Assembly (NCBI RefSeq): GCF_030144855.1 | Contig: NC_082710.1 | Span: 170,748,001-170,812,000, forward strand | Source of the DNA: Hypanus sabinus | Lineage: Eukaryota | Length of the DNA: 64,000 nucleotides | Reading direction: 5' to 3' | Shown: positions 3,001-51,149 of the stretch, one piece after another | Layout: every line of letters starts with the position of its first letter | Numbering within the stretch: position 1 is the stretch's first letter | Notes under the pieces: generated by a model | What the model was told of the DNA's origin: nothing | Seen by the model: only the letters and a program-made list of their open reading frames with translations | Database searches by the model: none | Position numbers and translations under genes: made by a program

Positions 3001-3110
3001 CCACTTCTTAAAGCTTGTGACATAATAACAACTATTTCCCTCTAAGATCTGACAAATAAAAGTTAAAAATTCAAATTTTAAACTGGAGAAAAGGAAGAAT
3101 TAATCGCTGC
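1..3110 (-). mobile_element. Degenerate L1-clade LINE (ORF1, ORF2 endonuclease and RT fragments)
   Basis: ORF1-like LEARSHQNNIRIVGLKEG..IERAHR (2471-2830), EN-like HPNDRDYSFFS, RT-like LLNVDAKILSKIVANR..DQTGFVKGR..LDAEKAFDRVEW; frameshifted. Confidence 0.9.
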
Positions 3111-3119
3111 CACACAAAA

Positions 3120-6100: not shown

Positions 6101-7430
6101 TGTCCTTCCTCACAAACTCCCTACAACTGTCCTTACTTATGCACCAACTGCCCCATCCCCAGCCTTTTCACTTTGGATCCCAACCCCCTGAAAATCTTGT
6201 TTAAACCCACCCCAACAGCACTAGCAAACGGTTCCTCTCCAGTTCAGGTGCAAACATCCCACTTGTACAGGTCACCACTTCCCCAGAAAGAATCCAATGA
6301 TCTAAGAACTTGAAATATTGCCCCTTGTACCATCTCCTCAGCCATTCATTCTTCTGCACTATCTTCCTGGCCTTGCCTAGCTCATGGCACAGGGAGTAAA
6401 CCAGAGGATATTGGAAGCCCTACTCATCAGCCTCCTTCCCAACTTCCTAATCTTACTGTACAGGACCTCTACCACTCTCCTGCCTATGTCATTGCTCCAA
6501 CATGTACCATTACCTCCAGATGCTCACCCTCCACTTCAAGAACCCAGAGACATCCTGGCCCCAAGCACCCGGGACACAACACACTATCCTGGTGTCTCTA
6601 TCTCCCATCTGTCACCCTAACTATCGAGTCCCCTATGACTATAGTTCCACCTAACTTCACCCTACTCTTCTGAGGCTTTTGGTCTGGCTGCTGCTGTCTT
6701 GCCCATTTAGGTCATTTCCCCCCCCCCCCAGCAGTATCCAAAGGGGTATAGCTGTTGCTGAGAGGAATAGCCTGCACTGATTTCTTTCTCTCTTTATCTT
6801 TTTCTGTATTCACCCATCTACTCTCTGAATTCTGCACTCTGGGTGTAACTCAATAGTCTTATCTATCAGCTTGCCTCCCTCCCGGATGATTGTTAGTTCA
6901 TCCAACTCCAGCTCCAGCTCCAGCTCTTTAATGTGGTCCTTCATGAGCGGGAGTTGGCTGTACTTCCTACGGGTATAGTCATCAGGGAGACTATCAGGTA
7001 CCATGAATTCCCACATTCTACAGGAGCAGCATTCCACAGCCATATCTGCCATCCTGCCTGCACCGTACAATGGGCAGCCAAGACCAAATCAGCCACAACC
7101 AAAGGAAAAAACCTGCCCTTCCTACCTGTTTCTTTGGCCTCAGCCTCTTCTCGTCCCACTCTGACAATGGCCACTCCACTGGACCCTATCTCTCTTATCT
7201 GGTTTAAAAAAAAGAAAGATCCCCACACAAGGAGAAGGAACTCATCACATTTGGTGCTGTGCCTGCCTTCCACTGGTGACAGTGCCTCCGACACGTCCCG
7301 CTCCTGTGAACTGGCTACGGTTTTTAAGAAAAATCCTCACACAAGGAGAAGGAACTCATCGGATTTGGTGCTCCGCCTGCCTTATGCTGCCGCTGATGCC
7401 TCTGAACTGATAGAGGTTTATCACTAATTA
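3120..7430 (-). mobile_element. Near full-length degenerate CR1 LINE with a nested + strand CR1 3' fragment at about 3506-3887
   Basis: ORF1-like (6810-7070), EN-like TRGEAVLDLVLGN..G.SD.NSISF, RT C-terminus KF.DDTKVG..LQQDIDR..FNPDKCEVVHFGRSN. The host sequence resumes on both sides of the nested piece. Confidence 0.9.
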
Positions 7431-7439
7431 GAGACACAG

Positions 7440-7760
7440 CCAATTGATATCATTGTCACAGGGGATCATGTCTAATTCCAGAGGGCATGAATTTAAAGTG
7501 GGAGGGTATGTTCAAAGGAGAAGTGTAGGCAAGTGTTTTCACAGACAGGTACAGTAGGGCATTGAACAGGCTCTTAAACAGGCACATGGGTGTGCCGGAA
7601 ATGAGGGATACGGACGCTATGTTGGGAAGGGTTAGTCTAATTGGACATCTGGTCACCAATTGGTTCGGCGCAACATTGTTTACTGAAGGGCCCATTACTG
7701 TACGGTACTGTCTAATGTATTTAAAATAGTAACTACTGAACCGTCCAGTCCATAGCCCAA
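7440..7760 (+). mobile_element. CR1 3' fragment
   Basis: agagggcatgaatttaaagtg...gggcccattactgtacggtactgt resembles CR1 3' ends. Confidence 0.6.
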
Positions 7761-8241
7761 TCACACTCTTTGTTAAAACATTTCTGCTAACGATTTACCA
7801 CCATATTCTTTCAAAGTTTCTACCCCCAATGCCAACTCCAAATGATGGCAGGTTCAGAACCAGAAACAGGTTTAATATCACCAGCATATGTCATGAAATT
7901 TGTCCACTTAAGCAGAAATACTATGCAATACATGATAATATAGAAAAGATAATAGGTAAATAGATCAATTTCAGTAAGTATGAATGTGTGTGAGTTTGTG
8001 TGTGTGTTTATTTATATATATATATATGTATATTAAATAGTTGAATTTAAAGATTGTGCAAAAACAGAACTAATAAAAAATGAAACAATGATTTCATCCT
8101 CCTTTAAACTGTGGTACTGACGATTGACAGCAAACAATCTCGAATGTTAAATGTGTCCGGTCTTTAACACTGGACCTTAATTCTCAGCCCAATGGCCAAC
8201 TTCTAAATGGGAAGCATTGACTCTCTCCTTTCCCACTGCAG

Positions 8242-8571
8242 GAAAAAGCAGGAGCTTCACGGTTACGCAAGGCCAGTCCAGTATATTTGTGGCTGAGGGT
8301 GAAACGGTCCTCATGGTCTGTAGCCATAATGCCAATCACTCCGGAGACACCCGGCTCTACAGCTGGTACAGGAACACATCTGAAGTCTCCAACGGGACGG
8401 CAGAGTATGCAGGGCGTGTCCTTGGGCCTGACCAGGAGGATTCCTTCAAAGCTTCCATTAAGCTGGTGGATGTGAGGGAGAGCGATTCCGGAATGTACTA
8501 CTGCAAAGTACGGATAGACGGGATTGGCGAGAAAATCGGAGATGGCGTTCAGTTGACCGTTAGTCACACAC
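8242..8571 (+). CDS. NCR3-like: Gene 1 exon: VJ-type Ig V-set domain, NKp30/NCR3-like (probably the second, membrane-proximal domain)
   Basis: Acceptor ctcctttcccactgcag and donor c|gtgagt; 330 nt, phase 1 to 1. Translation KSRSFTVTQ..VC..WYR..EVSNGTAEYAGRV..DSGMYYCKVRIDGIGEKIGDGVQLTV has the canonical Cys, Trp, DxGxYxC and an in-exon J-like GxG-x-x-LTV. It closely resembles my recollection of NKp30 (EVRNGTPEFRGRL...YVCRVEVLGLGVGTGNGTRLVV). Confidence 0.9.
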
Positions 8572-9414
8572 GTGAGTGATTCCCCAGACCGAGACAACAC
8601 CGAGCTTATTACCACCCACAATCACCCACACTCCCCCATCAACTTTCTATTGTTTGAGCCCTGTCAGGTTTCCTGCCTTCACTTCCAATGTGATCACCAA
8701 CGGGACTGACTGACCACTGCTGAATGTAGATGGGAGACTACAGATAACAAGAGTTACATTGGGGTGACTGGCTGGAGATGACACACTTATCAACACATGA
8801 ACAATGATTGGCTCAAAGTCCAGATTATAGACCAGTGGCAGTGGGTCACACACAATCCTTTGCCCTCCACTTGGTCGAGGTGGAGCAGTCAGTCACACAC
8901 TACCCTCTTGCCCCTCTGGGACCAGGTGGGGCAGTGGGTCACACACTGTCCGATCCTATTCTCAATGATTGGCCAACCCGCATCTCTGGTTGCTCTGCAT
9001 TTCTCCCACATCCCAAGGACATATGGGTTGGTGGTTTAATTGATTGCTGTAAATTGCCCCCGTGTTGGGAAGTGATAGAACTTCAGGGAATTTGAAAGGA
9101 AGGTGGGGGAGGATCAGATAATGGGAAAATAAATGGGATTAGTGTAGGACATGTACACTAATGTTAGTCGAAGATCAGCATTGAATGTGACTTTATCACC
9201 TGTAGGTCATCCTATACAATTATTGGAAAAGCAACTTCCCCGTGCTTTCTGCACTAGAATTGGGAAAAGAGGGTGTGGCAGAGGCAGGAATAATTTCACC
9301 AGTGGGGTTAAACACTTTCAGGTCAGCTGCCATGTCATTGTGTGCCTCACCATTCTCAAAGGGCCAAATGGCCTATTTGTGCTGATGTGTTCTGTGTTGT
9401 TTTCTCCCCCACAG

Positions 9415-9528
9415 GCAAACTAAAACCTGTCACGATTCTCCTGGTGATCCTGTTAGCAGCCTTTGGGATACAAGGGAGCATCCTGCTCGTCAGCATCCTG
9501 TTTCGTAGAAAAATCTGCAGTGCAGAAA
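9415..9528 (+). CDS. NCR3-like: Gene 1 transmembrane exon
   Basis: Acceptor ttttctcccccacag, donor a|gtaagg; 114 nt, phase 1 to 1. KLKPVTILLVILLAAFGIQGSILLVSILFRRKICSAE: hydrophobic stretch followed by a basic stop-transfer motif, with no charged residue inside the TM. Confidence 0.9.
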
Positions 9529-9559
9529 GTAAGGGGACTGAATCCTTTACCTCTATAAC

Positions 9560-10110
9560 CAGTTTAAGATCGTCAGATAGAGGGATTAGGCCATTCAGCC
9601 CATCAAGTTTGCTCCACCATTCCATATTGAGACTTTTTCCCCCTTGTAACCCTGTTCTTCTGCCTTTCCTCCATAACTTTAGAAACCAATACCCATCAGG
9701 AACCTATTAACTTCTGCTTTAAATATACCCAATGACTTGGCCTCCACATTTGTCTGGAGCAATAAACTCCACAGATTCACCACCTGGCCAAAGTAACTTT
9801 CCTTTATTTCCTGTTCTGAGTGGTGCTGTCTGGTCCTAGACGCTCTCAATATTGGAAATATCCTCGCCACATACACTCTATTTAGGCCTTTTAGTATTTC
9901 ATAAATGTCAGTAAGATCCATTCTCACCATTCTTCTAAACTCCAGCCTGTACAGGCCCAGGGCCAGCCATCGTTCCCCGTACATTAACTCTTTCATTCCC
10001 AGATCAGTTTTGTCATTCTCCTCTGGATCCTCTCCAATGCCAGCACATTGTTTCTTAGATATTGAGCCCCAAACAGCTCACAACACTGCCAATCTTGTTT
10101 GACCAATGCC
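9560..10110 (-). mobile_element. CR1 3' fragment
   Basis: ORF 9679-9996, ERWLALGLYRLEFRRM..DL..IYEILKGL.RV. Confidence 0.75.
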
Positions 10111-10944
10111 TTATATCCCTAAAGGTGAGGAACATTTGGAAAGCCCAAGGGGTTCCTCAGCATGTGTAGATAAGCAGGGCAATTGAGGTAGTAGAGCTGT
10201 GACTCAGCAACAGAGACACAGGCCCTTCAGCCCAACTCATCTCTGCTGACTGAGATGTCTGGTGCCATTAACCAGTGATTGGCCCATAAACCTTTGGTCA
10301 TGATGGTGCAAGCTGTGGTCTCTCTGGAGATCATGGCCCAGACTTAGTTGTACTTTTAAGTTTGAAGGGGTGGTTTTCAGGACAGAGAGTGGAGTCAGGG
10401 GTCAGATTAGGGTTTGTGGACAGGGATGTGAAGGAGGTAGAGGTCAGGACTCCACTCTGCGCCCAGTGATTTGGACGATTCACAAGGTGCACTCCGAGTC
10501 TGGGACTCTGCTCCGCACAATGATTCCAGCGATGCTGTCATGGCGATGAAATACATTCAGAGTTTAGGCCTCTGCTCTGTGCACAAAGGTTAGTCATGTG
10601 GGAGGGAATCTCCACGAAGGACACCATGAATGCTGGGCTGTCTCGGGTTGATGGGTCCCAGTATTGAACATCTGTGTGTCCAAAAGGCACAAGGCCCAGT
10701 CAGATGGCATCTGATTGTAATTGTGTCCAATTCAGCAGCTTTCTCTGATGACTAGGCTGGATTAACTTATTGTCAAATGCTCCGAGATGTGATGAAATCC
10801 CTTCCCTGTCTGAAGCTCACTGGTGTATGTGGTAATACTAAATAAAACAGCAAATACAGCGATGAGGACAAGACAACAGACTGGTGTAAGGAGAGTTGTG
10901 CAATGTAAAAGAAACGCTCGTCAGTGACAGGGAGGGCAGAATAG

Positions 10945-11210
10945 TGGGGCGGCGTGGTGACATTGTGGTTTCTGTAACACTGTTACAGTGCCAGCAAAGG
11001 GGTGGCTCAGTTCCTGCCACTGTCTGTAAGGAGTTTGTGTGTTCTCCCTGTGACTGCATCGGTTTCCAATGGGTGCAGTGGTTCCCTCCACATCCTAAAG
11101 ACATACAAGTTGTCTGGTTAATTGGGACATGGGTGTAACTGCAGGGAGCTGTCACGTCGGGCTGGAAGGACCTGTTACTGCCCTGTGTCCCTAAATAAAA
11201 ATAAAATAAA
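10945..11210 (+). mobile_element. tRNA-derived SINE (V-SINE-like); paralogous copy at about 57915-58180
   Basis: A-box-like and B-box-like head, central gtctgtaaggagtttgtgtgttctccctgtgac domain, A-rich tail taaataaaaataaaataaa. Confidence 0.7.
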
Positions 11211-11509
11211 CAAGAACGAAGAGACCAAGTACAACTATCTCTAAGTGAGTGGCAGTGGGTCACACCCTCATAAATCATCTTTGCGCCCTCTCCAGTGCAA
11301 TCACATCCTTCCTTCAGTGTGGCACCTGAACTGTGCACAGTCCTCCAGCTGTGACCTGACCAATGCATTATAAAGCCGTATCATCATCTTTTGTACTCCC
11401 TGTGCTGCCCAATGGAAGCAAGTATCCATGTGCTTTGTCCATACAACTGACTCGGTTTTGAGGGCTAAGTGGGAAACCAGTGCATTCTGAAACCACCTGG
11501 GTGGAGCTG

Positions 11510-12125
11510 CCAACAAGCAGACTCCTGGTGGGCACTCATTTCAGTTCTATTCCCTACTCCCATTCTGACACGTCTGTCCACAATGAGGCCAAACAGGGTG
11601 GAGAAGCAACACCTCATATTCCAGCTAAGGCGCCTCTAACCTGGTGGCATGAACATTGACTTCTCTAACTTCTGAAAATTCCTCTTGCCCCCCCCCCTCT
11701 CTTTTTCCATTCCTCATTCTGGTTACCTTCTCAGCCCTTTCCTTCTCCTTACCAAACCATCACCCTCTTCAGATGCCCCTCGTCCTTCCCTTCAATTGCC
11801 CTCTGTCCTCTCCTATCAGATTCTTTCATCTTCAGCCTTTCACCTCTTCTACTTATCACCCTCCCCCCAGCTTCTTACTTCATGTGCTCTCCGTCACCTG
11901 CCCACCTTGCCCCTCACCTGGTCTCACCTATCACTTGACAGTTTGTACTCCATTCCCCTCCCCTCACATTATCTTCTGGCTTCTACCCTCTTCATTCCCA
12001 GTCCTGTTGAAGGCTCTTGATCAGAAGAATCGACTGGTTATTGCTCTCCATAAATGCTGCCTGACCTGCTGAGTTCATCCAGCATTTTGTGATTGGTTCT
12101 CTGGACTTCCAGCATCTGCAGAATC
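11510..12125 (+). mobile_element. Penelope-like element 3' fragment
   Basis: ggagaagcaacacctcatattcc..ggcatgaacattgacttctc and the tgctgcctgacctgctgagtt tail, shared with other copies in the window (about 20590-21050 and 62760-63500). Confidence 0.6.
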
Positions 12126-12176
12126 ACTTGTGTTTGTTGACTAATCAGCATCTTTCTTCTCTCCTTCCCTTCACAG

Positions 12177-12195
12177 ATTCTGTTCTGGTTCAAAG
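12177..12195 (+). CDS. Gene 1 cytoplasmic micro-exon c1 (19 nt, (N)SVLVQ)
   Basis: Long pyrimidine tract ending tcacag and donor aag|gtgagt; phase 1 to 2; identical in the paralog at 59143-59161. Confidence 0.75.
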
Positions 12196-12292
12196 GTGAG
12201 TGTTTGTTACACTCTCAAGTTTCACAGAATCTGTGCCATTACCATGTAAAGGGACACACATGGAGTAAACCTTTTCCACTTTCTCTTCTCAG

Positions 12293-12330
12293 ACAGGAGC
12301 TATTTATTCTGAACAACAGCACCAGAGCGG
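12293..12330 (+). CDS. Gene 1 cytoplasmic exon c2 (38 nt, (R)QELFILNNSTRA)
   Basis: Acceptor cttttccactttctcttctcag, donor cgg|gtaagt; phase 2 to 1; splice sites retained in the paralog. Confidence 0.7.
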
Positions 12331-12629
12331 GTAAGTAAAAGCCCCCAGAGCCAATCTGTGTGATTGTATTAGGCAGACTTGTCTGTGATGTTAGAGTGTC
12401 ATACAGCATAGAGCTTGGCAATTCAGCCCTTCCTGTCCATGCTGACCCATCAAAATTACCCTCGCCTTCCACCACTTAACCTCGTGCCCTTGGCAATTCG
12501 AATGTCAATTTAGAATTGCCTTTCCCACAGAGGGGATTCAGAATTTGCTTGCCTGTAGAAGGCAGAAGGTGGTTGTAGATGGAGCCTGGAGGACGCTGAG
12601 CTCTGGTGCTCTATAGTGATCTCTTTTGG

Positions 12630-13500
12630 GACCACTGCTCTGTGTGATTTTTATAAATGATTCGGATGAAGAAGTGGGAGGGTGTATCAGTAAACTTGTA
12701 GATAACATAAAGGTTGTGGAGTTGTGAGTAGTGAGGAATGGTGTCAAGGATTACAACAGGACATTGATCGGATGCAGAGCTGGGCTGAGAATGGCACGTG
12801 GAATTCTATCCTGAAAATTGCGAAGTGATTCACTTAGGAAGGCTTAATTTGAAGGCAGAATACAGGGTGAATGGTAGAATTTCTAGCCGTGTAGAGGAAC
12901 AGAGGGATCTTGGAGTCCATGTCCACAGATCCCTGAAAGTTGCCGTGCAAGCTGATTGAGACATGACAAATGCGTATAATGTGTTGGCTTTCATTAGCTG
13001 GGAGAGTGAGTTCAAGAATCATGAAGTAATGTTGCAGCTCTACAAAACCCTTTGTGTTGAGTTGTGTGGAGATGTCAGGGGTAAGTTTTTTTTATGCAGA
13101 GACTGGTGAGTGCGTGGAATGGGCTGCCGGTGACAGTGGTGGAGGTGGACTTGATAGGGTCTTTTAAGAGACTCCTGGATAGGTACATGAAGCTTAGAAA
13201 AATACAGGGCTATGGGTAAACCTAGGTTTTTTCTAAAGTAAGTACATGTTCGGCACAGCATTGTGGGTTGAAGTGCCTGTATTATGCGATAGGTTTTCTA
13301 TGTTTCTTCTGAGTTCTCATCACGTCATTATTTACCACAGTGCTGCCTGGATGGGAGAGGATAGGCTGAGTGAGCCAGGGCTTTCCTCTTTAGAGCAAAG
13401 GAGGATAAAGGTGAATTGATAGAGGAGTACAGAATGATAAGAGGCAGAGATCAAGTGGACTTTTTCCCAAGGCTAATATGAGGAGCCATAATTTTATGGT
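12630..13500 (+). mobile_element. CR1 RT/3' fragments
   Basis: RT C-terminal motifs (agtaaacttgtagataacataaagg..caggacattgatcggatgcag..tgaagtgattcactt). Confidence 0.7.
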
Positions 13501-13631
13501 GTTTGGAGGAAAGTATAGGGGAATATCAGAAGTAAATTCTTTACACAGTGAGGGTAGGTGCCTGTAGAAAGCAGAGAATAGTTGTAGATCTGCCAGTGTT
13601 TGCATTAATATGCACATAATTAATTTTACAG

Positions 13632-13672
13632 CTGATCTAACTTCACCCCAGTTGGATGAAGGACCTGGGATG
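13632..13672 (+). CDS. Gene 1 cytoplasmic exon c3 (41 nt, (A)DLTSPQLDEGPGM)
   Basis: Acceptor taattttacag, donor atg|gtaagt. Open only in the phase-1 frame, which is the frame the upstream exon chain delivers. Confidence 0.7.
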
Positions 13673-15769
13673 GTAAGTCGGAAAGAAAAATAAAAACCCG
13701 CAGATGCTGGAAATCTGAAATAAAATCCGAGAATTCAGCAGGTTAAACAGTATCTTCAGAATATCAAACAGAGTTAAGGTTCTGGTATAGTGGGTTTTGA
13801 ACAGAACTGGGCAAAATTGAAAATATAGTTTAGATTGGATTGCTGTGAGGAGGGGATGGTAAAGAGAATAAAAGAGTGGAGAGCGAGAGAGACTGGATGA
13901 CATAAGTGGGGATTGCTCGCAATGAGGGAGGACGTGGATAACTGGTTCATTTTGCTTAGAAAAGTTTCAAGTGCTCATCTCTGTGTTTTTTGAATTTTGT
14001 GAAAGTCTGACTTCACCAGCTCATTTACAAGGAGCATCCACCATCCAGACCATGCTGTCTTCTCACTACTGCCATCAAGCATGAAGTACCAGAGCCTTGG
14101 GTCCCACACTACCAGTTCAGGAACAGTTATTTGCATACAACACGGGTTCCCAATCTTCTGATATGCCATGGACCAATACCATTAGGCAAGGATCCCACAT
14201 TCAAAACCCTGCCCTACAACCACCTGAACCAGTGTGAATAATCTCACTCACCTCAGCACTAAACTGACTCCACAACCAATAGACTAGCTTTCAAGAACTT
14301 TACAACCCAGTATTATTTATTTATTTATTTTTATTCTTTGTCTTCTTTTGCACACTGGTAGTTTGTCAGTCTTTGTTCATCATAGTTTGTCATAAAGTGT
14401 ATTGTACTTCTTTACTTTCCTGTAAATCCTTGCAAGAAAATTATTCTCAAGGGGGGGATAGAGTATATGTTCTTCAATAATAAATGTATTTGAATTCTGA
14501 AGTGATGAGAAAGGAATAAGAGTTCGGGAAGTGGCAGCACCACCGGGACAGGGATGTTATAGAGGCAAGTTGTTCAAAACTCTGACAGCAATGGGGAAGA
14601 AGCTGTTCTAGGAAAATAGAGCATAGAATGTCAAACAGTAGACGACAGGAACCACAAAGTTGTGCTGGACTAATTAAACTAATGGTGTCTAATTATGCTC
14701 CACCCGTACATGGTCACTTCCCTCCATCCTGTCCATTGTGAGTATCTACGATTCTCTTAAACATCTCTGTTGTATCTGTCTTCTCCACCACTACCCCCGG
14801 CAGCACATTCCCAGCACCATCACTCCGTGTGGAAAGAAAAGCTTGCTCTATACACCTCCTATAAACTTTCCCCGTCTCAGCTTAAACATTGAGTCTGGAC
14901 ACCCCGGCTCTCGAGCTGCTGTAGACCATCAGAAATGCTCATTGTAATATCTTATTTCACAACAGGCTCAAGATGGGAATGCCCCTCCATGCCCGGTAAG
15001 ATGCTGTCTTTTTCACTCGGAGTGTTCATAAGAAAACTGATTTGTAATAAAATGTCACTAGTTTCATGTTCTCTACTTCCCGGTTCAAGGTCCGTCCTTG
15101 ATCCAGTCTACACAACCCTATTCACCAACCCATTATGGCAACAGTTTGCAACTATAATGAAGTTTTTCTGGTCTAATTTTGTACTTTCTTGCAAAATTTG
15201 TGTATAATTGATACTTCCTTGATGTTTTCCTTGTGAATGTTATTTATCTGATGTTGTGTGCCTGTGATGCTTCTGCAAGTCCATTTTTCATTGCATTTGT
15301 GCCTATATATGATGATGTTATTGACCCAGTAGAGCTCCTGATCACCGTTATTGACCTGAAATGACCTCTGCCACCTCTATTGACCTAGGGAGGTCTCACT
15401 AACTCCACACAAGGTCCCAGATTATACAATCCATGGATATTATTCCATATCTGATCACTAAACATTCGGTGCTTGAACCAACCTGCACAACCCTAATCAC
15501 CACCTCAGTAAAGCAACGTTGCATTATGATGGACTTTGTATTTGTTCTAATTGGGTTTCTTCTTAAATAATTGGTGCCATCGAGCACTGTAACACAAAAA
15601 ACAGGTTCTTCTAATAATGACAATGGTCTTTGAGTGGTATGGGCTATCAAAGTTTCTGCAAGTAAGTTTTTCATTGCACCTGTACATACTGTACTTGTAC
15701 ATCAAGCAATAAACTTGACTTTGAAATTTTTAAAAACTCTTGATGTCATAGAATCAAACAAGCATTGGG

Positions 15770-16600
15770 CATGATAATGATAATGCATTTTGGTAAAAGC
15801 AACAATAATTCAGACTATTATCTAAATGGGGAGAAATTTCAAACCTCGGAGGTGCAGAGGGACCTAGGGATCCTCATGCAAGACTCCCAGAAGGTTAAAT
15901 TAAAGGTTGTGTCTGTGGTAAAGAAGTTAAATGCAATGTTGGCATTCATTTCAAGGGGAATAAAATATAAAAGCAAGGAGATAATGCTGAGGCTTTAGTC
16001 AGGCCACACTTGGAGTATTGTCAACAGTTGTCAACAGTTTTCAGCCCCTTACCTCAGAAAGGATGTGTTGTCATCGGAGAGGTTCCAGAGGAGTTTCTCA
16101 AGTATTATTCCAGGAATGAAGGGGTTCACATATGCAGAGCATTTGGCGGCTTTGGGCCTGTACTCACTGGAATTTAGAAGCATGCGGGGGTGGGAGGATC
16201 TCACTGAAACCTACCAAATGTTGGAAAGACTAGATAGGGTTTATGTGGAGAGCATGTTTCCTTGGGTGTGTGATTCCGGAACGAGAGGGCACAGCCTCAA
16301 AATTGAGGGGCAACCCTTTAGAACAGAGTAAGGAGAAATTTTTTTTAGGCAGAGAGTAGTGAGTCTGTGGAATGCTCTGGCACAGACTGTGGTGGAGGCC
16401 AAGTCTCTGGGCATATTTAAGGCAGAAGTTGATCATTTCCTGATCAGTCAGGGCATCAAAGGATGTTGCGAGAAGGCTGGTGTGTTGGGTTGAATGAGAT
16501 CCGAAATCAGCCAAGAAGCAATGACACAGCAGACTCGATGGGCTGAATGGCCCAATACCATTTCTATATTTATGGTATTATACTCCTATGACTTATGGTC
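15770..16600 (+). mobile_element. CR1 3' fragment
   Basis: ORFs 15765-15998 (HFGK.N...QRDLGIL..DSQKV..KK.NAMLAFISRGI.YK) and 16065-16331. Confidence 0.8.
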
Positions 16601-16646
16601 TTATGACTTGTGACATGGCTTAATTTTCATTCTTTATGAGTTCCAG

Positions 16647-16681
16647 CCGGAAGTCGAATCGATCCACGAACCAATGCAAAA
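16647..16681 (+). CDS. Gene 1 cytoplasmic exon c4 (35 nt, PEVESIHEPMQ)
   Basis: Acceptor ttccag (an in-frame alternative AG 6 nt upstream adds FQ), donor aaa|gtgagt; phase 0 to 2 bridges c3 and c5. Confidence 0.6.
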
Positions 16682-17789
16682 GTGAGTATGGATCCAGCCA
16701 ATGCTGGATTAGTTGGCTTGCCCCATATGAAGTGTTACCCAGGGTCCAGTGTCACACGCTGTGTGCACGCTTTATTCAGCAGTGAGATGTATCGCCATCC
16801 CAAACTGGCCCACTGCTGAGGAGAGTTCAATACAGTTTGTGGGCTGTCCAGGGAGCAGACTGGAGCAGCAGGATGGAGCAGTGAAGCCTGGTGTCCTGAC
16901 ATCATGGGAGCAGTAGTTGCTATTCAAGTTGATGCATTGTGTAGTGAGATTATGCAGATGGTAGAGCAAAATTGTAGTCAGTGGGATGGGTTGCAGTGTA
17001 ACATGGGGTCAAAGTCAAGAAGGGTAATGAATACAGGACTGAGATGTTATATTTCAGTAGGTTCAATGGGTACATTTGATGTCAGAGAAATGTATACAAT
17101 ATACATCATGAAAAGCCTTTTCTTCGCAAACATCCACGAAAACAGAGGAGTTTCTCAAAAGAATGAATGACAGTTAAACGTTAGAACCCCAGAGTCCGCC
17201 CAGCTCCCCCTCCCACACACAGTCAGCAGCAAGACAATGATTCCTCCCTCCCCCCCAGTAAAAATCATCAGCACTCAAGCATACAGCAAAGCAACAATAA
17301 AGACACCGACTCCAAAGACTACTCATTCACCCGGTAATCCAACATACCTCAGGCTCTCTCTTGCCCTAATAAGGGAAAAAAGGTGTGCCTGTTTCACAAT
17401 GAGAGGGGAGTTGTAACAAACAACTCACTGATAATTGGGTTTTAAAAGTCTGTTGTGTCCGTTTTTTACTGAGCTCTCTGCCCAAAGAACTCAGGTCTTG
17501 GGCACACAGTCAGCAGCTAGCCCGCTGCTCCCGATGTTCCCTGTTCTCCTGCAACGCCTCAGGGTCAGGGACACTGACCTTGAATCAACCCATCTCCAGA
17601 GCCAGGAAAATCCGGCACCCTGAAGAAGCACTAGTCTTCCAGGCTGCGTCCTTGGGATATCAAAAAGCAGCCGGTCGTGAGGCCCTGAGAGAGGGTCCCA
17701 TCCCCATAAAGAACCAAAGTCAGTGTGTAACTCCCAGTCAGGGTCTTCAAAAGAACTTTTAAAGCAAAAAAGATGGAAATAGAGCCATC

Positions 17790-18900
17790 AGAATTTATGG
17801 GGTTGTGGCCAAGTCTGCAGATGATACAATGACAGATGGAGGGACAGGTAGTGTTGAGGAAGCAAGGGCTCTGACAGATTGGGAAAATGGATAAAGGAGC
17901 AGGTGGAATATGGTGTAATGAAGTGTATGCTCATGAACTTTGGTAGAAGAAATAAAGGCATAGTCTATTTTCTAAATGGGGATAAAATTCAAAAATTAGA
18001 GGTGCAACTTGTGCAGGATTCCCAAAGATGGACTTACAGATTGAGTCAATGAAGGCAAGTGCAATGTTAGCATTCATTTTAAGAGGATTTGAATAAAAAA
18101 GCAAGGTTGTGATGCTGAGGCTTTATAAGGCATTGGTCAGACTGCACTGGAGTATTGGGAGCAGTTCTGGGCCCCATGTCTAAGAAAAGATGTTTTGGCA
18201 CTGGATAGAGTCCAGAGGAGGTTCAAGAGAATGATCCAAAATGAAAAGCTTATGGTTTGAGGAGCATTTGATAGCCCTGAGCCTGTACTCCCTGGAACTT
18301 AGAACAATGAAGGGGAATCTCATTGAACCCTTTAGAATTGTGAGGGATAGCGATAGGATGATTGTAAGCAGGCTTTGCTCCATTGAGGTTGGGTGGGATT
18401 ATAACCATTTGTCATGGCTTAAGGGTCAAAGGTGAGAAGTTTAAGGGGAACATTGGGATAAAACTTCTTCACTCAGAGGGTCATGAGAGTGTGGAATGAG
18501 CTGCCAGTGCAAGTGCTCCACACAAGGTCGATTTCAAGGTTTAAGAGAAGTTTGGACATGAATAGTAGGAATCTGGAGGACTATAGTCCCAGTGCAGGTT
18601 GATGGGAATCGGCAGTTTAAATGGTTTTGGGCATGGACTAGATGGCCGAAGGGTCACTGTCTGTGCTGTACATCCCTATAGCTCTTTGAATATTGAAAGG
18701 CCTAGCCAGAGAGGATTGTTCCCACAGTGGTGGAATCTGGGACCAGAGCACACAGCCTCAGAATAGAGGGACGTATATTTAGAACAGAGTTGATTAGAAA
18801 TTTCTTGAGCCAGGGGATGATGAATCTGCTGAATTCATTGCCACGGGCGGCTGCAGAGGCCAACTCATTGGGTATATTTAAAGCGGAGTTTGATAGTCTT
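17790..18900 (+). mobile_element. CR1 fragments
   Basis: gtttgcagatgatacaa-like RT motif and ORF 18241 (LIALSLYSLELR.M.GNLIE). Confidence 0.7.
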
Positions 18901-19169
18901 TTGGTTAGTCAGGCTGTGAAACACCTGACCCAAGGCTGCTGCAGACAGATTACACTGGGCCTGTGTACATTTCTGACTCCAGGCCCCTCTCTTCTCCCTG
19001 ATACATTACCCCATTGTCCTTTGGAAATTTGTCTACTCCTCTCTGGGGCATCTCCTGCCCCAGTACTGCTCACAGCAACACAGGTTTATGAAGCAGCACA
19101 TGAACAGGACCACCCTTCCCCTTGCACCTTATCAATGAGTGAACTCCTTCCCCCTCTTTCTCTCCACAG

Positions 19170-19207
19170 CCTGAAGACATTCGGTATCTCAACAGACAAT
19201 GGCATGG
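19170..19207 (+). CDS. Gene 1 cytoplasmic exon c5 (38 nt, (N)LKTFGISTDNGM)
   Basis: Acceptor cccctctttctctccacag, donor tgg|gtaagt; phase 2 to 1. Confidence 0.7.
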
Positions 19208-19309
19208 GTAAGTAACTCCCCTTGAGCGTGGCTGACGCAAAAACGGCTGCAACCTCTGAACTCCCTGACACCCCACTCTCTCCTCACCTCAGCAGGCCAG
19301 CTGCCCCAT

Positions 19310-19690
19310 CAGTCCTAGCTGTCAGCATCACCAACAGCCTGTCCTGGTCCGTCCACATTGATGCCACGGCCAGGAAAGTTCACCAACACCTCTACTGCCC
19401 CAGGAAGTATCACGGCTTGGTAGGCAACTGCTCTGCCCAAGACCACAATGAAATGCACAGCTCAGCACATCATGGGAACCGGCCTCACCTCCACACACTC
19501 TGCATTTCTCGCTGACCTGGCAAAGACCCCCGTCCACCCCGGTCACTGGCACTTGTTGCCCATCCCATTGGGCAGAAGGTACAAACTTCTCAAAGACCGT
19601 ACCACCAGGATTCAGGACAGCTTCTACCCCGCTGTTATCAGAGTATTGAACCATTCACTTGTACGATCAGATGGAGTCTTGACCTCACAG
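19310..19690 (+). mobile_element. Rex1/Babar-type LINE 3' fragment
   Basis: SITNSLSWSVHIDATARKVHQHLY and HPGH..L.P.GRRY.LL..RTTR.QDSFYPAVIR.LN motifs. Confidence 0.7.
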
Positions 19691-20012
19691 TCCACCTCCT
19701 CATGTCTCACAATCCACCTCCTCATGTCTCACAATCCACCTCCTCATCTCTCACAATCCACCTCCTCATCTCTCACAATCCACCTCCTCATGTCTCACAG
19801 TCCACCTCCTCATGTCTCACAATCCACCTCCTCATCTCTCACAATCCACCTCCTCATCTCTCACAATCCACCTCCTCATGTCTCACAGTCCACCTCCTCA
19901 TCTCTCACAATCCACCTCCTCATGTCTCACAGTCCACCTCCTCATGTCTCACAGTCCACCTCCTCATCTCTCACAGTCCACCTCCTCATGTCTCACAATC
20001 CACCTCCTCATG
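19686..20012 (+). repeat. 22-bp minisatellite, about 15 copies, (tctcacaatccacctcctcatg)n
   Basis: Directly visible tandem units with a/g and c/g variants. Confidence 0.95.
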
Positions 20013-20402
20013 TCCTTGCACCGCACTTTCCCTGTAAATACAACACTACATTCGGTGCTTTTCCCTTGTGCTATATCGATGCACTGACTTGATGAAATGG
20101 TCTGTGTGATGTCTGTACTTCAGTGCAGTAATAAATAACTTACCAATCTAATAAGCAGACCAGGGTTCAGAATTGTCCTCATACAAGCGGGCACTTTCAA
20201 CTAATGAAATCCGCAATTTATTCACAATGCAGAAACCCATTTCGGCACAGGAATAACACACAAGGGGGTAACAAAAGGAATTAGGAGCAGGAATCGTGTC
20301 CAGTGGCACCTTTCACTCCTCCTTCCCGTGCTCTCCATGTTCCTGCCTGTTGCTTTCAACTGTGGTAAAGGTTCACTGATATTCTCGTATTTGCTCTCAC
20401 AG

Positions 20403-20452
20403 ATGTGAGCACCCAGTGCAGACCAGACAACTCGCCGGTCCCTGATGGAGAG
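20403..20452 (+). CDS. Gene 1 cytoplasmic exon c6 (50 nt, (D)VSTQCRPDNSPVPDGE)
   Basis: Acceptor ttgctctcacag, donor gag|gtaagt; open only in phase 1; ends in phase 0. Confidence 0.75.
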
Positions 20453-22123
20453 GTAAGTACATATATATATTGTTATGTAGTTCATATCCTTGACAAATAG
20501 GAGACTATTCAGCCTTTTCATGTCTGTGCATTCATTTTTCTTGTAAATCTTCACAAAACAATTGTAGCTACCAACTTTTATGCCTCATTCTTGCTTTTCA
20601 AAGAACCTCGAGTCTAAATCTGCAGATGCTGGAAATTCGAGCAACACACCCAAAAGGTTGGAGGAACAATACTTTATATTCCGTTTGGGTTGCCTCCAAC
20701 CTGAAGGCTTCAACATCAATTTCTTGAACTTCCAGTAATGCCTCCCACACCCATCTCCTTCACCATTCCCCTTTCCCATTTCCCTCTCTCACCTTATCTC
20801 CTTGCCTGCCTCCCCCTTTTCTTTCTTCCATGACCTTCTGTCCCTTTCAACAATTTACCTCCCAGCTCTTTACTTCATCCCCTGCCCATTCAGGTTTCAC
20901 CCATCACCTGGTGTTTCTCTCTCCTCTCCCCCCACCTCTTCAATCTACTCCTCAGCTTTCTTTCTCCAGTCCTGCTGAAGGATCTCGGCTCAAATCATCG
21001 ACTGTACTCTTTTCCTAGATGCTGCCTGACCTGCTGAGTTCCTCCAGTGTTTTGTGTGTGAGACCCAACGCCCTGTACCAATAGTAGAGATTGATGTAAT
21101 TTGTTGGGGATTGGAAGAATGTTGTGGAAAATTTGCGGCTGGAACTGAGAGCTGTTGTCACAAAGCTCCTGAACCCAGGGTCAATATGACTTCTTCCCTC
21201 AGAGTGTCATGTGCTTGTGGAACGAGCTGCCAGCGCAAGTGGTGCATGACAGCTCAGTTTCAATGCTTAAGAGAAGTTTGGATAGGTACGTGGAGAGCGG
21301 TGGCATGGATGGCTTTGGTCCAGGTGATGGTCGATGGGACTCGGCAGTTTAAATGGCCAACTAGAATTGGCCCCCTTTATTCCAACCTTAAGCCCTCTTG
21401 CCAATCAGCCAATCTTCAATCCATGTTAGTATCTCTCCGTTATACCATCGGATTTTATCTTGTTAATCAGCCTCACGTGCTGTACTTTTCATCCCACATC
21501 CCAAAACTGAGCAGCTTGATACCTCGATAGGCCGCTGTAAGTTGCCAAGGTGGGCCGTGGAATCCGGGTCTAGGAATGTTGGAGAGAGAATACTGCAGGC
21601 TAGCATTGATCTGGTGGGCTGAACTTCCTTTTGTGACATGATGTGGGTGAACCGTCTGTAAATAACTAACTGGAGACACAAGAGAAGGCAAATGCTGGAA
21701 TCTGGAGTGTCAAACATTCTGCTGGAGGACTCATCGAGTCGAGCAGCCTCTGTGGTGGGGGTGGGGTGTTGGGGGGACATTTCCGGTCCGAACCCTAAAC
21801 ACTGCGCCACAGATCGGAAGTGGAGATGGCTTGTAAAAGAGATGAGGTGTGACAGGGGTAACTGGTAATGGCTGCTGGATAACAGGCAGATAATGCTGGG
21901 CAGCTATGGGAAGGATGGGATATTTGATCGGCGAGCTTGGCAAGATGTTTCAGCTACGATCATGTGGGATATGATTGGTTGTCATATCTCTTGGATCTGG
22001 ATCTGGCAATTAGGGGAGCATCAGGGCAGACGTGGACCCGTTCTAATCTAATCCTTCACTGTATTGCCGTTTTCCATGCTGATTGTGCTCAGATCATTCT
22101 AATCTAATCCTTTTCTCCACAAG

Positions 22124-22221
22124 GTACCCGCTGTACAGAGCATCCAGTACACAGTGATATATCCAAGTTACTCCAAAAACCAAGCTCCTGCCAAGACATC
22201 GGTGGAAGATGGCGATCTGGA
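22124..22221 (+). CDS. Gene 1 cytoplasmic exon c7 carrying the ITIM (VPAVQSIQYTVIYPSYSKNQAPAKTSVEDGDL)
   Basis: Acceptor ctaatccttttctccacaag, donor gga|gtgagt; 98 nt, phase 0 to 2. IQYTVI fits the ITIM consensus (I/V/L/S)xYxx(I/L/V). Confidence 0.8.
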
Positions 22222-22497
22222 GTGAGTTACTTACTTATCTCAGCCTAATTGTGGCTGGATACAGGGTCACTGAGCTATGGGGAATCACAGCACAGAAACA
22301 TGCCCTTCAGCCCAGTATAATACGTGGACTGTGTTGTTTGTGGACGCAGACAACTCATTTCACTGTACAGGGTTCGATGTGCATGTGTCAGGTAAAGATA
22401 ATCTTCAAATCATAGGTGGAAGGATTGGAGAGAAGATTGGGAACAACATTTTCACAGGAGTCCAGAACTCCCTTTGTGAAAGGGCAGGAGACACAGA

Positions 22498-23156
22498 NNN
22501 NNNNNNNNNNNNNNNNNNNNNNNNNNNNNNNNNNNNNNNNNNNNNNNNNNNNNNNNNNNNNNNNNNNNNNNNNNNNNNNNNNNNNNNNNNNNNNNNNNNN
22601 NNNNNNNNNNNNNNNNNNNNNNNNNNNNNNNNNNNNNNNNNNNNNNNNNNNNNNNNNNNNNNNNNNNNNNNNNNNNNNNNNNNNNNNNNNNNNNNNNNNN
22701 NNNNNNNNNNNNNNNNNNNNNNNNNNNNNNNNNNNNNNNNNNNNNNNNNNNNNNNNNNNNNNNNNNNNNNNNNNNNNNNNNNNNNNNNNNNNNNNNNNNN
22801 NNNNNNNNNNNNNNNNNNNNNNNNNNNNNNNNNNNNNNNNNNNNNNNNNNNNNNNNNNNNNNNNNNNNNNNNNNNNNNNNNNNNNNNNNNNNNNNNNNNN
22901 NNNNNNNNNNNNNNNNNNNNNNNNNNNNNNNNNNNNNNNNNNNNNNNNNNNNNNNNNNNNNNNNNNNNNNNNNNNNNNNNNNNNNNNNNNNNNNNNNNNN
23001 NNNNNNNNNNNNNNNNNNNNNNNNNNNNNNNNNNNNNNNNNNNNNNNNNNNNNNNNNNNNNNNNNNNNNNNNNNNNNNNNNNNNNNNNNNNNNNNNNNNN
23101 NNNNNNNNNNNNNNNNNNNNNNNNNNNNNNNNNNNNNNNNNNNNNNNNNNNNNNNN
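22498..23156. other. Assembly gap (659 N) in the gene 1 c7-c8 intron
   Basis: Run of N. Confidence 1.
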
Positions 23157-24308
23157 AATGTACTTCTATATCAACTTGCACCATTCCAGTCCGCTACCAC
23201 TCTGTGTGTTTAAAAAAAACACTTACTCCACAATCTCCTCTGAACTTTCTCTTTCTCACCATAAGTGCATTTCCTCTAATATTTGATGTCTATAATAATC
23301 ATTCAATTATAATATTAATGAAATAATTAAATGATTAAAATAATGATAAAAGATGGATTAATATATAACCAAAAAGAACACCAAATGGTCACTTTGACGT
23401 GGTTGAATTCTGTGAGTGAAAGTCACCCTGGAGTTTATTGTCATGTGCATGGATGCAGTGAAACACTTACTTGCAGCAGCATCGCGTAAACAGAGTAACA
23501 CACAAAATGCTGGAGGAACTCAGCTGGTCAGGCAGCATCTATGGAGGGGAATAAACACTCACTGTTTCAGGCTGAGACCCAACATCGTGTCTGAAAAGGA
23601 AGTTGGGTGGGGTGGGGGGAGAAAGAGAGAAGGAAGAATGAGAAGGTAAAGGTGGTGGGGGTAAGGAATACAAGCTGGCAGGTGATAGGTGAGACCAGGT
23701 GAGAGGGAAGGTGGGTGGCATCTGTCTGTGTTGTGTTGGATTTCCAGCATCTGCAGAATCTCTTGTGTTTATTGTACTAACAGTATTCTCAAGCAAAGCA
23801 TAAATTTTACATATTTTTCATGACTTCACTCGCCTCTTGAATGAGTCTAGTTTTGTTCCTTTCCGTGCAGAACATTGGGGCAGAAACACAGTACTGGGGC
23901 GACAGCACTGCGTGGGTGCCTGTAACAAAATATACCTGAGGTCTGGCTCCAGTGCAGCCAGTGTCACTGTGCGCCGGGTGCAGCATGTAATGGTGGGAGT
24001 AGGGAGATATTGTGGGGCTGCCCCAATGCACCCACTACGAGGTGAATCCTTACAGCCACCACATCCATCTCCGAATAGTGAGGGTTTTCAACAGGAGGAA
24101 GTCGTGTCACGGCGTGTCAGAGTCTCCCCGGGGCATTAAACGGCAGGGCAGGCAAGAGCACTGGCATTGTATAGCTTGGCCTTCTCAGAGCAAAGATGCT
24201 GAGTTTCGTCAAGTAAAAATCTGACGCCAGTCACCACAGGAAGGTAAAATGCCAGCAGCACAGAGTCCTGATCTCATTAACCCCATCTTCCCCCACTTCC
24301 TTTGGCAG

Positions 24309-24343
24309 GAAGGACTACGGCTACAACGAGCTGAACGTGACAG
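24309..24343 (+). CDS. Gene 1 cytoplasmic exon c8 with YxxL motif ((E)KDYGYNELNVT)
   Basis: Acceptor cccccacttcctttggcag, donor cag|gtgagc; 35 nt, phase 2 to 1. Confidence 0.8.
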
Positions 24344-24384
24344 GTGAGCATCAAGAGAAGCAAACCAAAGGGACTCGGGGGGTA

Positions 24385-25100
24385 CAGGGGAACTGGAGTA
24401 AAATAGTGGAGTTAAAATGGGGAATGGGGTAAAATAGTCAGTGAGGTTAAAATGGGGACTGGGATAAAATAGTGGGGATAAAGTGGTGACTGAGGGGTTA
24501 AAATGGATACAGTCATTAAAGTGGAGACTCAGAGGTAAAATGTGAATGGGGGTTCATGGGAACGGGTAAAATAGTGGGATTAAAATGGGAACTGGGGTAA
24601 AATAGTGGGGTTAAATGGGAAATGGGGTAAAATAATCAATGGGGTTTAAATAGGAATGGGTAAAATAATGGGGTTAAATAGTAATGGGGTAAACTAGTCA
24701 GTGGGGTTAAAATGGCAATAGATTTAAAATGGGGACTGAAATCAAATGGGGATAGGAGTAAATATATCAGTGGGGTTAAAATAAGGATGGAGTGGTTAAA
24801 ATGGATACAGTAATTAGAGTGGGGATGGAGGAGTAAAATGAGAATAGAGGTTTTATGGGATCTGGTTAAAATAGGCAGAGGTGTTAAAATGGTGGTTGGA
24901 TTTAGGCTCAATAGTGACTGAGGAGATTATACAAGAATGGGACTAAATGGGTACAGAGGGGGTTAAACAGGAACGGGGCTAAATGGGGACTGATGGGGTT
25001 AAACAGGAACGAGGCTAAACAGAGACTGAGGGGTTTAAAAGGAATGGAGTAAATAGGAACTCGGGGTTAAACAGGAATGGGATAAATGGGCAGTGGGGAT
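24385..25100 (+). repeat. Degenerate G-rich/A-rich tandem repeat (ggggtaaaatagt / ggggttaaaatgg-like) in the c8-c9 intron
   Basis: Dozens of GGG(G)-TAAAAT units; strongly C-depleted on the + strand. Confidence 0.85.
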
Positions 25101-25221
25101 AAAACATCAAAGGATCATCCTCAATCATCTTACTGATCTAGCAAGTGTCCCTCCCTGACATCTGTCAATAAAGTTTACTGATGCTTTAGGTGCCTCATTC
25201 GCTTCTTTCTCTATTTCACAG

Positions 25222-25259
25222 CAAAACGTAGCCTTCAGGCTGAAGGAGACACAAACCAG
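25222..25259 (+). CDS. Gene 1 cytoplasmic exon c9 ((A)KRSLQAEGDTNQ)
   Basis: Acceptor ttctttctctatttcacag, donor cag|gtaaga; 38 nt, phase 1 to 0. Confidence 0.8.
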
Positions 25260-25396
25260 GTAAGAAAGCAAGCATTTGCTGAGGCCAGGGGAAGTGCGGA
25301 GATCCTGGAGAACTTGAGGATCCTGGAGATCCTTGGTTCTTTCCTCCCAGCAGTCAGGCCGCACCACTTAACAGAATTAATTTGTGTTTTCATTAG

Positions 25397-25525
25397 GAAG
25401 ATGGGACTGTGAACCAACTGATCGTGAAGAAGATAGGGGAAGAAGCAGATCCTCAACCGTGCTCTCAGCAGTCGGGTCAGGAATATGACGAGGATTCCAG
25501 TTCTGTTCCTCTGATTGAACCTTGA
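25397..25525 (+). CDS. Gene 1 terminal coding exon c10 (EDGTVNQLIVKKIGEEADPQPCSQQSGQEYDEDSSSVPLIEP*)
   Basis: Acceptor tttgtgttttcattag; phase-0 frame open for 42 codons to TGA at 25523-25525. Confidence 0.75.
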   Translation, partial: EDGTVNQLIVKKIGEEADPQPCSQQSGQEYDEDSSSVPLIEP

Positions 25526-25691
25526 ACCCCCGATGGCAACAGATTGTTCACAACTGCTCCGTGTCGTCGAAAGAAATCTGTCAATGGCTTGAGTTTGTGC
25601 CTCTGTGCTTGCTTCAGCTTCCACCTCGGTTACTCTCCCCGAATTAACAGATCAAACCAAACTCTCTCCTCGAGTGTGGGATTGCTGGTGT

Positions 25692-25697
25692 AATAAA
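25692..25697 (+). terminator. Candidate polyadenylation signal of gene 1
   Basis: AATAAA about 170 nt downstream of the predicted stop. Confidence 0.4.
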
Positions 25698-25964
25698 CCT
25701 GGAGGGGAATCACACTATTTATCACCACCGCAGAGTCACAAGAGGCTGCCGATTCTGGAATCCGGAGCAGCACACTCAACGCTGGAGGAACTCCGTGTGT
25801 CCGGCGTTATCTGTGGAGGGAAATGGAGAGTCAGAGTCTCTGCTCTGGAAACTAGAGGGGAGACAGCCAAATGTATAAAGATGGAGAAGTGCTGGCAGGT
25901 GAGGGGGGTGATAGGCAGATGGGGGGGGTGTAGTGTGGAAGCAGGTTCATGGGTTTGGTGAGTC

Positions 25965-38237: not shown

Positions 38238-38280
38238 ATGGAGGTGGGCCCCATTCTGTGGCTCCTGACCGTCTCCTCCG
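38238..38280 (+). CDS. NCR3-like: Gene 2 leader (signal peptide) exon, MEVGPILWLLTVSS(G)
   Basis: ATG in strong Kozak context (gcgATGG), hydrophobic core, donor ccg|gtgagt in phase 1. Joins the V exon to give MEVGPILWLLTVSSGIGA|EKFVVIQ, a typical signal peptide. Confidence 0.85.
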
Positions 38281-42053: not shown

Positions 42054-42322
42054 NNNNNNNNNNNNNNNNNNNNNNNNNNNNNNNNNNNNNNNNNNNNNNN
42101 NNNNNNNNNNNNNNNNNNNNNNNNNNNNNNNNNNNNNNNNNNNNNNNNNNNNNNNNNNNNNNNNNNNNNNNNNNNNNNNNNNNNNNNNNNNNNNNNNNNN
42201 NNNNNNNNNNNNNNNNNNNNNNNNNNNNNNNNNNNNNNNNNNNNNNNNNNNNNNNNNNNNNNNNNNNNNNNNNNNNNNNNNNNNNNNNNNNNNNNNNNNN
42301 NNNNNNNNNNNNNNNNNNNNNN
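42054..42322. other. Assembly gap (269 N) between the tandem copies
   Basis: Run of N. Confidence 1.
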
Positions 42323-51120: not shown

Positions 51121-51149
51121 ACTGGAGAAAAGGAAGAATTAATTGCAGC

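Follow-up and report, generated by a model that had tools for sequence, protein, structure and literature searches.

A window of 64,000 nt from Hypanus sabinus (contig NC_082710.1, 170,748,001-170,812,000), the whole stretch of DNA that was analysed, was examined, and all positions below are relative to it. The DNA is of vertebrate genomic origin, contains many fragments of retroelements, and is interrupted by two N gaps, one at 42054-42322 and the other in an intron of the gene studied here. Apart from retroelement fragments, the window contains only two receptor genes. The gene of interest occupies 8242-25525 on the + strand. Judged from its sequence, this interval would be the 3′ two-thirds of a gene, encoding that half of a type I membrane receptor which lies nearer the membrane. 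We consider it likely that this receptor belongs to the chondrichthyan NCR3 (NKp30) family, in a long-tail subfamily common to rays and sharks.

The initial annotation had joined a V-domain exon, a transmembrane (TM) exon and ten tail micro-exons (c1 to c10) into one stop-free frame. All twelve exons were found at the proposed places and in the proposed sizes, with only small boundary corrections. When the chain was translated with phase 1 at the V acceptor, the frame stayed open through to the TGA at 25523-25525. The V exon has a strong acceptor (ttcccactgcag/GA, with a slash for the exon boundary) and a gtgagt donor, and its phase 1 translation is a 109-residue V-set domain (Pfam V-set, E = 1.9e-13). 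The TM exon encodes RKLKP-VTILLVILLAAFGIQGSILLVSILF-RRKICSAE. As had also been claimed, c3 has only one open frame, as does c6, and in both it is the frame delivered by the chain.

On the other hand, the ten tail micro-exons are not the complete set. An in-frame exon of 30 nt, named cx here, had been overlooked between c3 and c4, making eleven cytoplasmic micro-exons. Because of its length, cx leaves the rest of the reading frame unaffected. The tail is 181 aa long as first counted, but 191 aa with cx.

Short intervals bounded by AG and GT are plentiful in this DNA (67 of length 19 alone), and splice sites were therefore scored irrespective of frame. A crude position weight matrix was applied to 9600-25700 (16 kb), with acceptors of at least 6 and donors of at least 4 being accepted. 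On the + strand, six exon candidates passed these strict thresholds, and all six are in the chain (c1, c2, c5, c6, c8, and c9). At equal thresholds, the - strand as a control yielded one candidate. The acceptors of c3, c4, c7, and c10 are weaker than those of the strict-threshold exons. However, c5 is closed in the frame that it would receive if c3 and c4 (76 nt, 1 mod 3) were absent, and c9 is closed unless a sequence like c7, with a length of 2 mod 3, falls between c6 and c8. Thus, the exons with weak acceptors are constrained, because the strong exons stay open only with intervening exons of the right length mod 3. Furthermore, every exon of the chain has a collinear counterpart in homologous proteins. 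The exon chain is confirmed to be real, not a product of chance.

To collect homologues, the V domain was used as the query of an exhaustive HMMER search. The best full-length relative is an uncharacterized protein of 419 aa from Mobula hypostoma (XP_062903900.1, LOC134346462), referred to as P0002. When P0002 was compared with the window by tblastn, the chain was recovered in exon order at ~80% identity. The V exon matched at 81%, c3, c4, and c5 were aligned, and the TM exon, c6, c7, and c9 matched as listed in Table 1; c1, c2, and c8 were matched to P0002 in a MAFFT alignment. P0002 resembles the window gene in its exon order, its micro-exon tail, its immunoreceptor tyrosine-based inhibitory motif (ITIM, NIQYAVI), its DGYDELNV segment, and its AKRSLQ... 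end. Unlike the window chain, P0002 includes a leader and another V domain, and keeps a YxxM tyrosine (LIYTPM). Its c4 begins three codons earlier, and the protein ends after c9 without the 42-codon extension of c10. In sharks, the counterparts of c10 are weak, with E(E/G)NG(E/T)N...C in common.

The first V domain of P0002 (V1), which follows its leader, is of a different sequence type from the second (V2). The second gene of the window, made up of a leader, V1, and TM and tail exons from 56373 onward, displays the same leader-V1-...-TM-tail layout. Because this layout is found in both P0002 and the second window gene, the model of the studied gene is 5′-incomplete. By comparison with the Mobula homologue and the second gene, the exon at 8242 does not encode the single V of an NKp30-like molecule, but V2, the V domain next to the membrane in a receptor that has at least two of them. 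The phase of its acceptor (x+GA) suits ...TVRG/KSRSF, which matches ...AVRG/KSKNF of Mobula. Neither tblastn with both V types nor the listing of open reading frames (ORFs) revealed a V exon or leader in 1-8241, where only retroelement fragments were found. With the placement of 38238-44027 relative to 48062 in the second gene as a guide, the studied gene would have its leader and V1 at least 4 kb upstream of the window start.

The assignment of the V domain to the NKp30/NCR3 family was supported by a sequence match in the PDB, by a profile, by Foldseek and, provisionally, by grouping with nurse shark NCR3 entries. In a phmmer search against all PDB sequences, the four top matches were NKp30 chains (E ~1e-8). 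When 13 family V domains were combined into a profile, NKp30 was the best single-domain match in the PDB (70 bits, E = 1e-18). Only chains with two to five V domains outscored it, by summed scores, and the next chain with a single V domain was an antibody light chain at ~49 bits. When an AlphaFold model of the V domain (predicted local distance difference test score, 78) was submitted to Foldseek, NKp30 took the top four places (E = 3.5e-10 to 7e-9), followed by SIRPalpha. Human NKp30 (PDB 3NOI, 3PV6, and 6YJP) is the closest solved structure, with ~30% identity to V2, and has NGT(A/P)E(Y/F)xGR and a J-like G strand in common with it. V2 is a germline-joined VJ-type domain encoded by a single exon, and its G strand (GDGVQLTV) has the J-like form GxGxxLxV expected of NCR3 V domains.

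A maximum-likelihood tree was built from 63 V domains. V2 falls in a clade with the V2-type domains of Mobula (support 100/100), which is within a long-tail clade (93/91). The long-tail clade lies inside a chondrichthyan group that includes the nurse shark entries QTT61904.1 and P0164 and whose support is weak (86/63). Sister to the chondrichthyan group are sequences from amphibians (among them frog sequences named NCR3), gecko, and the teleost Astyanax, and FCRL-like and syg-2-like domains are outside. In the databases, names of nearby relatives include ‘natural cytotoxicity triggering receptor 3’ (the two nurse shark entries) and NCR3-like (several sharks).

Another Mobula hypostoma protein, P0001 (XP_062903898.1, 602 aa), has one V1 and four V2-type NKp30-like domains, the latter being 80-89% identical to V2 of the window, and is nevertheless annotated as ‘polymeric immunoglobulin receptor-like’ (pIgR-like). 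Its four V2-type domains indicate that V2 exons multiply and vanish readily in this family. Automatic names such as pIgR-like, SIRP-beta-like, and turtle homolog mislabel the long-tail NKp30-like family.

The TM segment is uncharged, as initially described, having no K, R, D, or E. Human NKp30 is an activating receptor with a single V domain, a TM arginine for pairing with CD3zeta/FcRgamma, and a short, ITIM-free tail. Its charged TM is a mammalian trait that the window gene lacks. Like V2, the nurse shark NCR3 proteins P0146 (the QTT61904.1 entry) and P0164 have a non-rearranging, single-exon VJ-type V domain, with a V identity of ~36%. These entries reportedly stem from work by Kinlein et al. 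in Immunogenetics in 2021. In P0164, the TM is uncharged and a tyrosine motif is present, while P0146 has a lysine in its TM and almost no tail; neither of them shows a long tail with three modules. Since P0164 also lacks a charged TM, such a TM is not family-defining in sharks. A paired-receptor system had been suggested, but no activating partner was found within the window, where both genes carry the same uncharged TM exon. The closest relative seen with a charged TM is the distant P0146.

The tail has one tyrosine module per exon, with a YxxM position in c4, an ITIM in c7, and DYGYNEL in c8. The ITIM (SIQYTVI) fits the canonical (S/I/V/L)xYxx(I/V/L). As [IV]xYxx[IL], it is invariant in six elasmobranch species, and nothing else in the tail is as strictly conserved; the YxEL motif of c8 is likewise conserved. 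IQYTVI is followed by YNEL at the spacing first reported, 29 residues from Tyr to Tyr. The likening of this pair to the tandem ITIMs of KIRs did not survive, however. YNEL has a tyrosine rather than a hydrophobic residue at position -2 and does not fit TxYxx(V/I), so that it was rejected as a second ITIM and as an immunoreceptor tyrosine-based switch motif (ITSM), leaving a plain YxxL. The pair was also rejected as a tyrosine-based activation motif of immunoreceptors (ITAM), for which the spacing should be 6-8 residues, and Grb2 binding through YxN was rejected for YNEL, which has no Asn at +2. YNEL lies within a conserved acidic segment, D-Y-G-Y-(D/N)-E-L, and DYGYDELNxT is kept in rays and sharks. 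At the c4 position, relatives have IYxPM (YxxM), whereas the window gene has IHEPM with a change of Tyr to His.

Four shark tails, those of Scyliorhinus (P0005, XP_038671255.1), Heterodontus (P0153, XP_067865377.1), Chiloscyllium (P0154, XP_072406317.1), and Stegostoma (P0161, LOC132206215), have the same modules in the same order. Their module 1 is IY(T/I/L)PM.S(L/V)K(T/E)F, module 2 is (I/V)(Q/H)Y(A/T)x(I/L), and module 3 is D(Y/F)(G/E)Y(D/E)ELNxT(A/V)(K/R). These long-tail NCR3-like proteins have one to three NKp30-like VJ domains (V identity to the window gene, 40-50%) and an uncharged TM, except that the P0005 model has no visible TM stretch, and some of them have extra repeated tail exons. 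An uncharged TM followed by a tail with two motifs is an established feature of inhibitory Ig receptors with ITIM pairs. KIR2DL/3DL, LILRB, SIRPalpha, PECAM-1, PD-1, and BTLA all have it, with an ITIM and a second tyrosine motif 20-30 residues off in a long tail. The likeness is a functional analogy; the ectodomain families of these receptors are unrelated to, or distant from, that of the window gene.

Alternative splicing could alter the tail. The equivalent of cx in Heterodontus is present in isoform P0153 but absent in P0041. Exon cx is probably a cassette exon, and the tails of 181 and 191 aa may both exist. In addition, if c5 to c7 (186 nt) were skipped, the ITIM would be lost while the frame was maintained. 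The Heterodontus protein P0151 has a c4-like segment joined straight to a c8-like segment, as in such a skip. By analogy with Heterodontus, regulated isoforms of the window gene are possible.

ITIM receptors are phosphorylated by Src-family kinases and then recruit SHP-1/2 or SHIP. From this precedent, we infer inhibitory signalling by the window receptor. Its V domains would bind a ligand (B7H6-like by analogy only), and Src-family kinases would phosphorylate the tail. The phosphorylated ITIM would recruit SHP-1/SHP-2 or SHIP, so that activation would be damped. YNEL, 29 residues downstream, could dock a second SH2 domain or act in sorting. Unlike mammalian NKp30, the receptor would not pair with CD3zeta/FcRgamma via a charged TM residue.

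The second receptor gene of the window is related to the first by a segmental duplication. Two blocks are ~96.5% identical between the copies, as 1-7901 corresponds to 48062-55947 and 9315-15653 to 56273-62641. Between them, the downstream copy has a clean deletion of ~1.2 kb (equivalent to ~8136-9314) that removes the entire V2 exon. The two V1 exons of the second gene sit in segments of 3.8 kb that are 98.9% identical and flank the N gap at 42054-42322, and this exon pair is either a true tandem duplication of a V exon or an assembly duplication. When the paralogous exons (~97% identity) were compared, 8 differences were found in 212 exon bases, which is uninformative against 3.1% overall. 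Incidentally, 5 of the 38 bases of c2 differ between the copies, against ~3% overall, with the frame open in both (RQELFILNNSTRA here and SQELSTLNNSTIA in the paralogue). Relaxed or diversifying change in the part of the tail near the membrane may account for this c2 divergence. The features of both genes are listed in Table 1.

Table 1 Exons and other features of the two NKp30-like genes in the window. Splice scores are from the position weight matrix; a slash marks an exon boundary.
Feature	Position	Strand	Remarks
V2 exon	8242-8571	+	single-exon VJ-type Ig V domain, phase 1-1; J-like GDGVQLTV; acceptor 11.2
Stalk/transmembrane/juxtamembrane exon	9415-9528	+	82% identity to P0002 residues 235-273; paralogue keeps counterpart at 56373-56486
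Tail exon c1, 19 nt	12177-12195	+	acceptor 12.2, donor 8.3; identical in paralogue; P0002 match NSLLFQ
Tail exon c2, 38 nt	12293-12330	+	acceptor 10.2, donor 6.4; P0002 match RQELSTLNDSTTA
Tail exon c3, 41 nt	13632-13672	+	tblastn match P0002 ADLPSPQLEEGP; acceptor weak (-2.8), donor good (6.4)
Extra tail exon cx, 30 nt	14966-14995	+	AQDGNAPPCP; tblastn match P0002 AEDGNAPPCP; flanks ...cacaacag/ and /gtaaga
Tail exon c4, 35 nt	16647-16681	+	IHEPM; P0002 EIQPEDELIYTPMQ by tblastn match and alignment; acceptor -1.8, donor 5.2
Tail exon c5, 38 nt	19170-19207	+	LKTFGISTDNGM; acceptor 11.2, donor 4.8; P0002 match LKTFSNSMDNGM
Tail exon c6, 50 nt	20403-20452	+	open in frame 2 only; tblastn match P0002, E = 4e-4
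Tail exon c7, 98 nt	22124-22221	+	ITIM SIQYTVI (IQYTVI codons 22142-22159); tblastn P0002 79% identity, E = 2.5e-12
Assembly gap	22498-23156		within c7-c8 intron (c7 end 22221, c8 start 24309)
Tail exon c8, 35 nt	24309-24343	+	KDYGYNELNVT (YNEL codons 24322-24333); acceptor 9.2, donor 6.9
Tail exon c9, 38 nt	25222-25259	+	AKRSLQAEGDTNQ; acceptor 9.2, donor 7.0; 77% identity to P0002 C-terminus
Terminal coding exon c10, 129 nt	25397-25525	+	42 codons and TGA; acceptor 2.0; shark C-termini weakly similar
AATAAA, candidate polyadenylation signal	25692-25697	+	167 nt past stop
Second-gene leader exon	38238-38282		MEVGPILWLLTVSSG; phase 1 splice sites
Second-gene V1-type NKp30-like V exons	39626-39964; 43689-44027		phase 1-1; the latter a 97% identical copy
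Paralogue exons kept in second gene	TM 56373-56486; c1 59143-59161; c2 59259-59296; c3 60602-60642; cx ~61957-61986		splice sites intact

Several points weigh against an inhibitory NKp30-family receptor as the product of this gene. Mammalian NKp30, the CD28 family, SIRP, TIGIT, and NITR were not included in the tree; the homologues are all computational gene models or uncharacterized proteins, and the window gene is itself a genomic prediction; c3, c4, and c10 have low-scoring acceptors; and YNEL does not fit the canonical form of an ITIM or ITSM. With YxxM present in relatives, the ancestral tail may be co-stimulatory or mixed. Indeed, because of this module, the ancestral tail looks mixed-signal, BTLA- or PECAM-like rather than KIR-like, and from the motifs the tail of the family as a whole looks mixed-signal rather than purely inhibitory. 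The window receptor itself could accordingly be mixed-signal or co-stimulatory, the tail of its family combining a PI3K-type YxxM, an ITIM, and an acidic D-Y-G-Y-D-E-L resembling a hemi-ITAM (hemITAM) or an endocytic YxxPhi, and its output would then be set by cell type or isoform as with BTLA, PECAM-1, and the a/b/c isoforms of human NKp30. IY(T/I/L)PM in the Mobula, Scyliorhinus, Heterodontus, Chiloscyllium, and Stegostoma homologues speaks for such a mixed-signal or co-stimulatory receptor, as do the missing -2 hydrophobic residue of YNEL, the alternative inclusion of the cx-equivalent exon in Heterodontus, and the frame-keeping c5-c7 skip that removes the ITIM, the layout of P0151. However, with the YxxM tyrosine replaced by His in the window gene, the ITIM is the sole canonical motif left, and no tail element is more strictly conserved. 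We regard a mixed-signal output of this gene as a serious but less probable alternative to inhibition.

Two further explanations are far less probable. The gene lies in a recently duplicated, fast-changing cluster that is losing exons, and could be decaying. It would then be a non-functional paralogue in a young segmental duplication, unexpressed and intact by chance, which would agree with the ~96.5% identical duplicate 47-48 kb downstream lacking the whole V2 exon, with the loss of the YxxM tyrosine from the studied copy, and with the retroelement fragments that fill the introns. We find this improbable, because each of the window's 13 exons is open and in phase, with AG and GT at its borders, neither the ITIM nor the YxEL module is damaged, the stop is followed by a polyadenylation signal, and ~330 stop-free codons at ~20% divergence from the Mobula counterpart are unlikely for a dead gene. 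The gap in the c7-c8 intron could also conceal a wrong join of paralogues. In that case, c7 and the exons before it would come from one paralogue and c8 to c10 from another, making the pairing of ITIM and YNEL an artefact of assembly. The gap is indeed precisely between these exons, the cluster has many near-identical paralogues, and the other gap of the window divides two nearly identical segments. However, the reading phase is unbroken across the gap, as c7 leaves two bases (GA) and c8 gives G to yield ...DGDLE-KDYGYNELNVT, and identity to P0002 is alike on either side (79% and 77%). Five homologues have a c7-type ...D(L/S)E directly joined to a c8-type xD(Y/F/D)(G/E)Y(D/E)EL with 0 extra residues, and therefore no coding exon is expected in the gap. 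With c8 directly after c7 in every homologue, even a mis-join would give the normal architecture of the family. A chimera is thus very unlikely.

The idea of an ITIM-bearing NKp30-family receptor in cartilaginous fish, as proposed initially, is not new at the database level. RefSeq already has ray and shark models of this architecture, with names that say little about it, such as the uncharacterized long-tail proteins P0002, P0005, P0154, and P0153. Two other shark proteins, P0141 and P0087, which are named NCR3 or NCR3-like, also combine an uncharged TM with ITIM or ITSM tails, with VQYAEI and TMVYAKV in P0141 and two NVQYxxL motifs in P0087. No paper describing the long-tail subfamily was found in the literature searched, with the key shark NCR3 papers lying outside that search. 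A survey of the CD28 family (PMC11599192) concerns different genes.

The finding is a carefully supported gene model for a single member of an NKp30-like cluster that is large and evolves fast in a ray. The NKp30-type binding domain, which in mammals is known from an activating receptor only, occurs in cartilaginous fish in receptors with an ITIM tail conserved between sharks and rays. From this conservation, inhibitory or mixed-signal members probably existed in the NKp30 family early in the history of jawed vertebrates. Current views are not overturned, since NCR3 was already recognized as a multigenic and divergent family in sharks. More speculatively, the long-tail branch might be an undescribed ancient lineage of sharks and rays with one signalling module per micro-exon, in which exon skipping could switch among inhibitory, co-stimulatory, and motif-less isoforms. 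If so, the lineage would be an early counterpart of the isoform switch of human NKp30 a/b/c. In practice, the model can be used for annotating genes that RefSeq calls ‘uncharacterized’, ‘pIgR-like’, ‘SIRP-beta-like’, or ‘turtle homolog’, and for picking constructs for tests of ligand binding and signalling.

Two kinds of repetitive sequence were additionally observed in the window. Fragments with reverse-transcriptase similarity (RVT_1), resembling long interspersed nuclear elements, are on the - strand at 22-414, 3804-4325, 47631-48476, and 51686-52360, and include a duplicated pair at the start of both segmental copies. Tandem repeat arrays with periods of ~22 nt and ~72 nt are located at 19684-20014, in the c5-c6 intron, and at 26716-27288, just 3′ of the gene. 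The former array gives rise to a long spurious ORF at 19448-20092.

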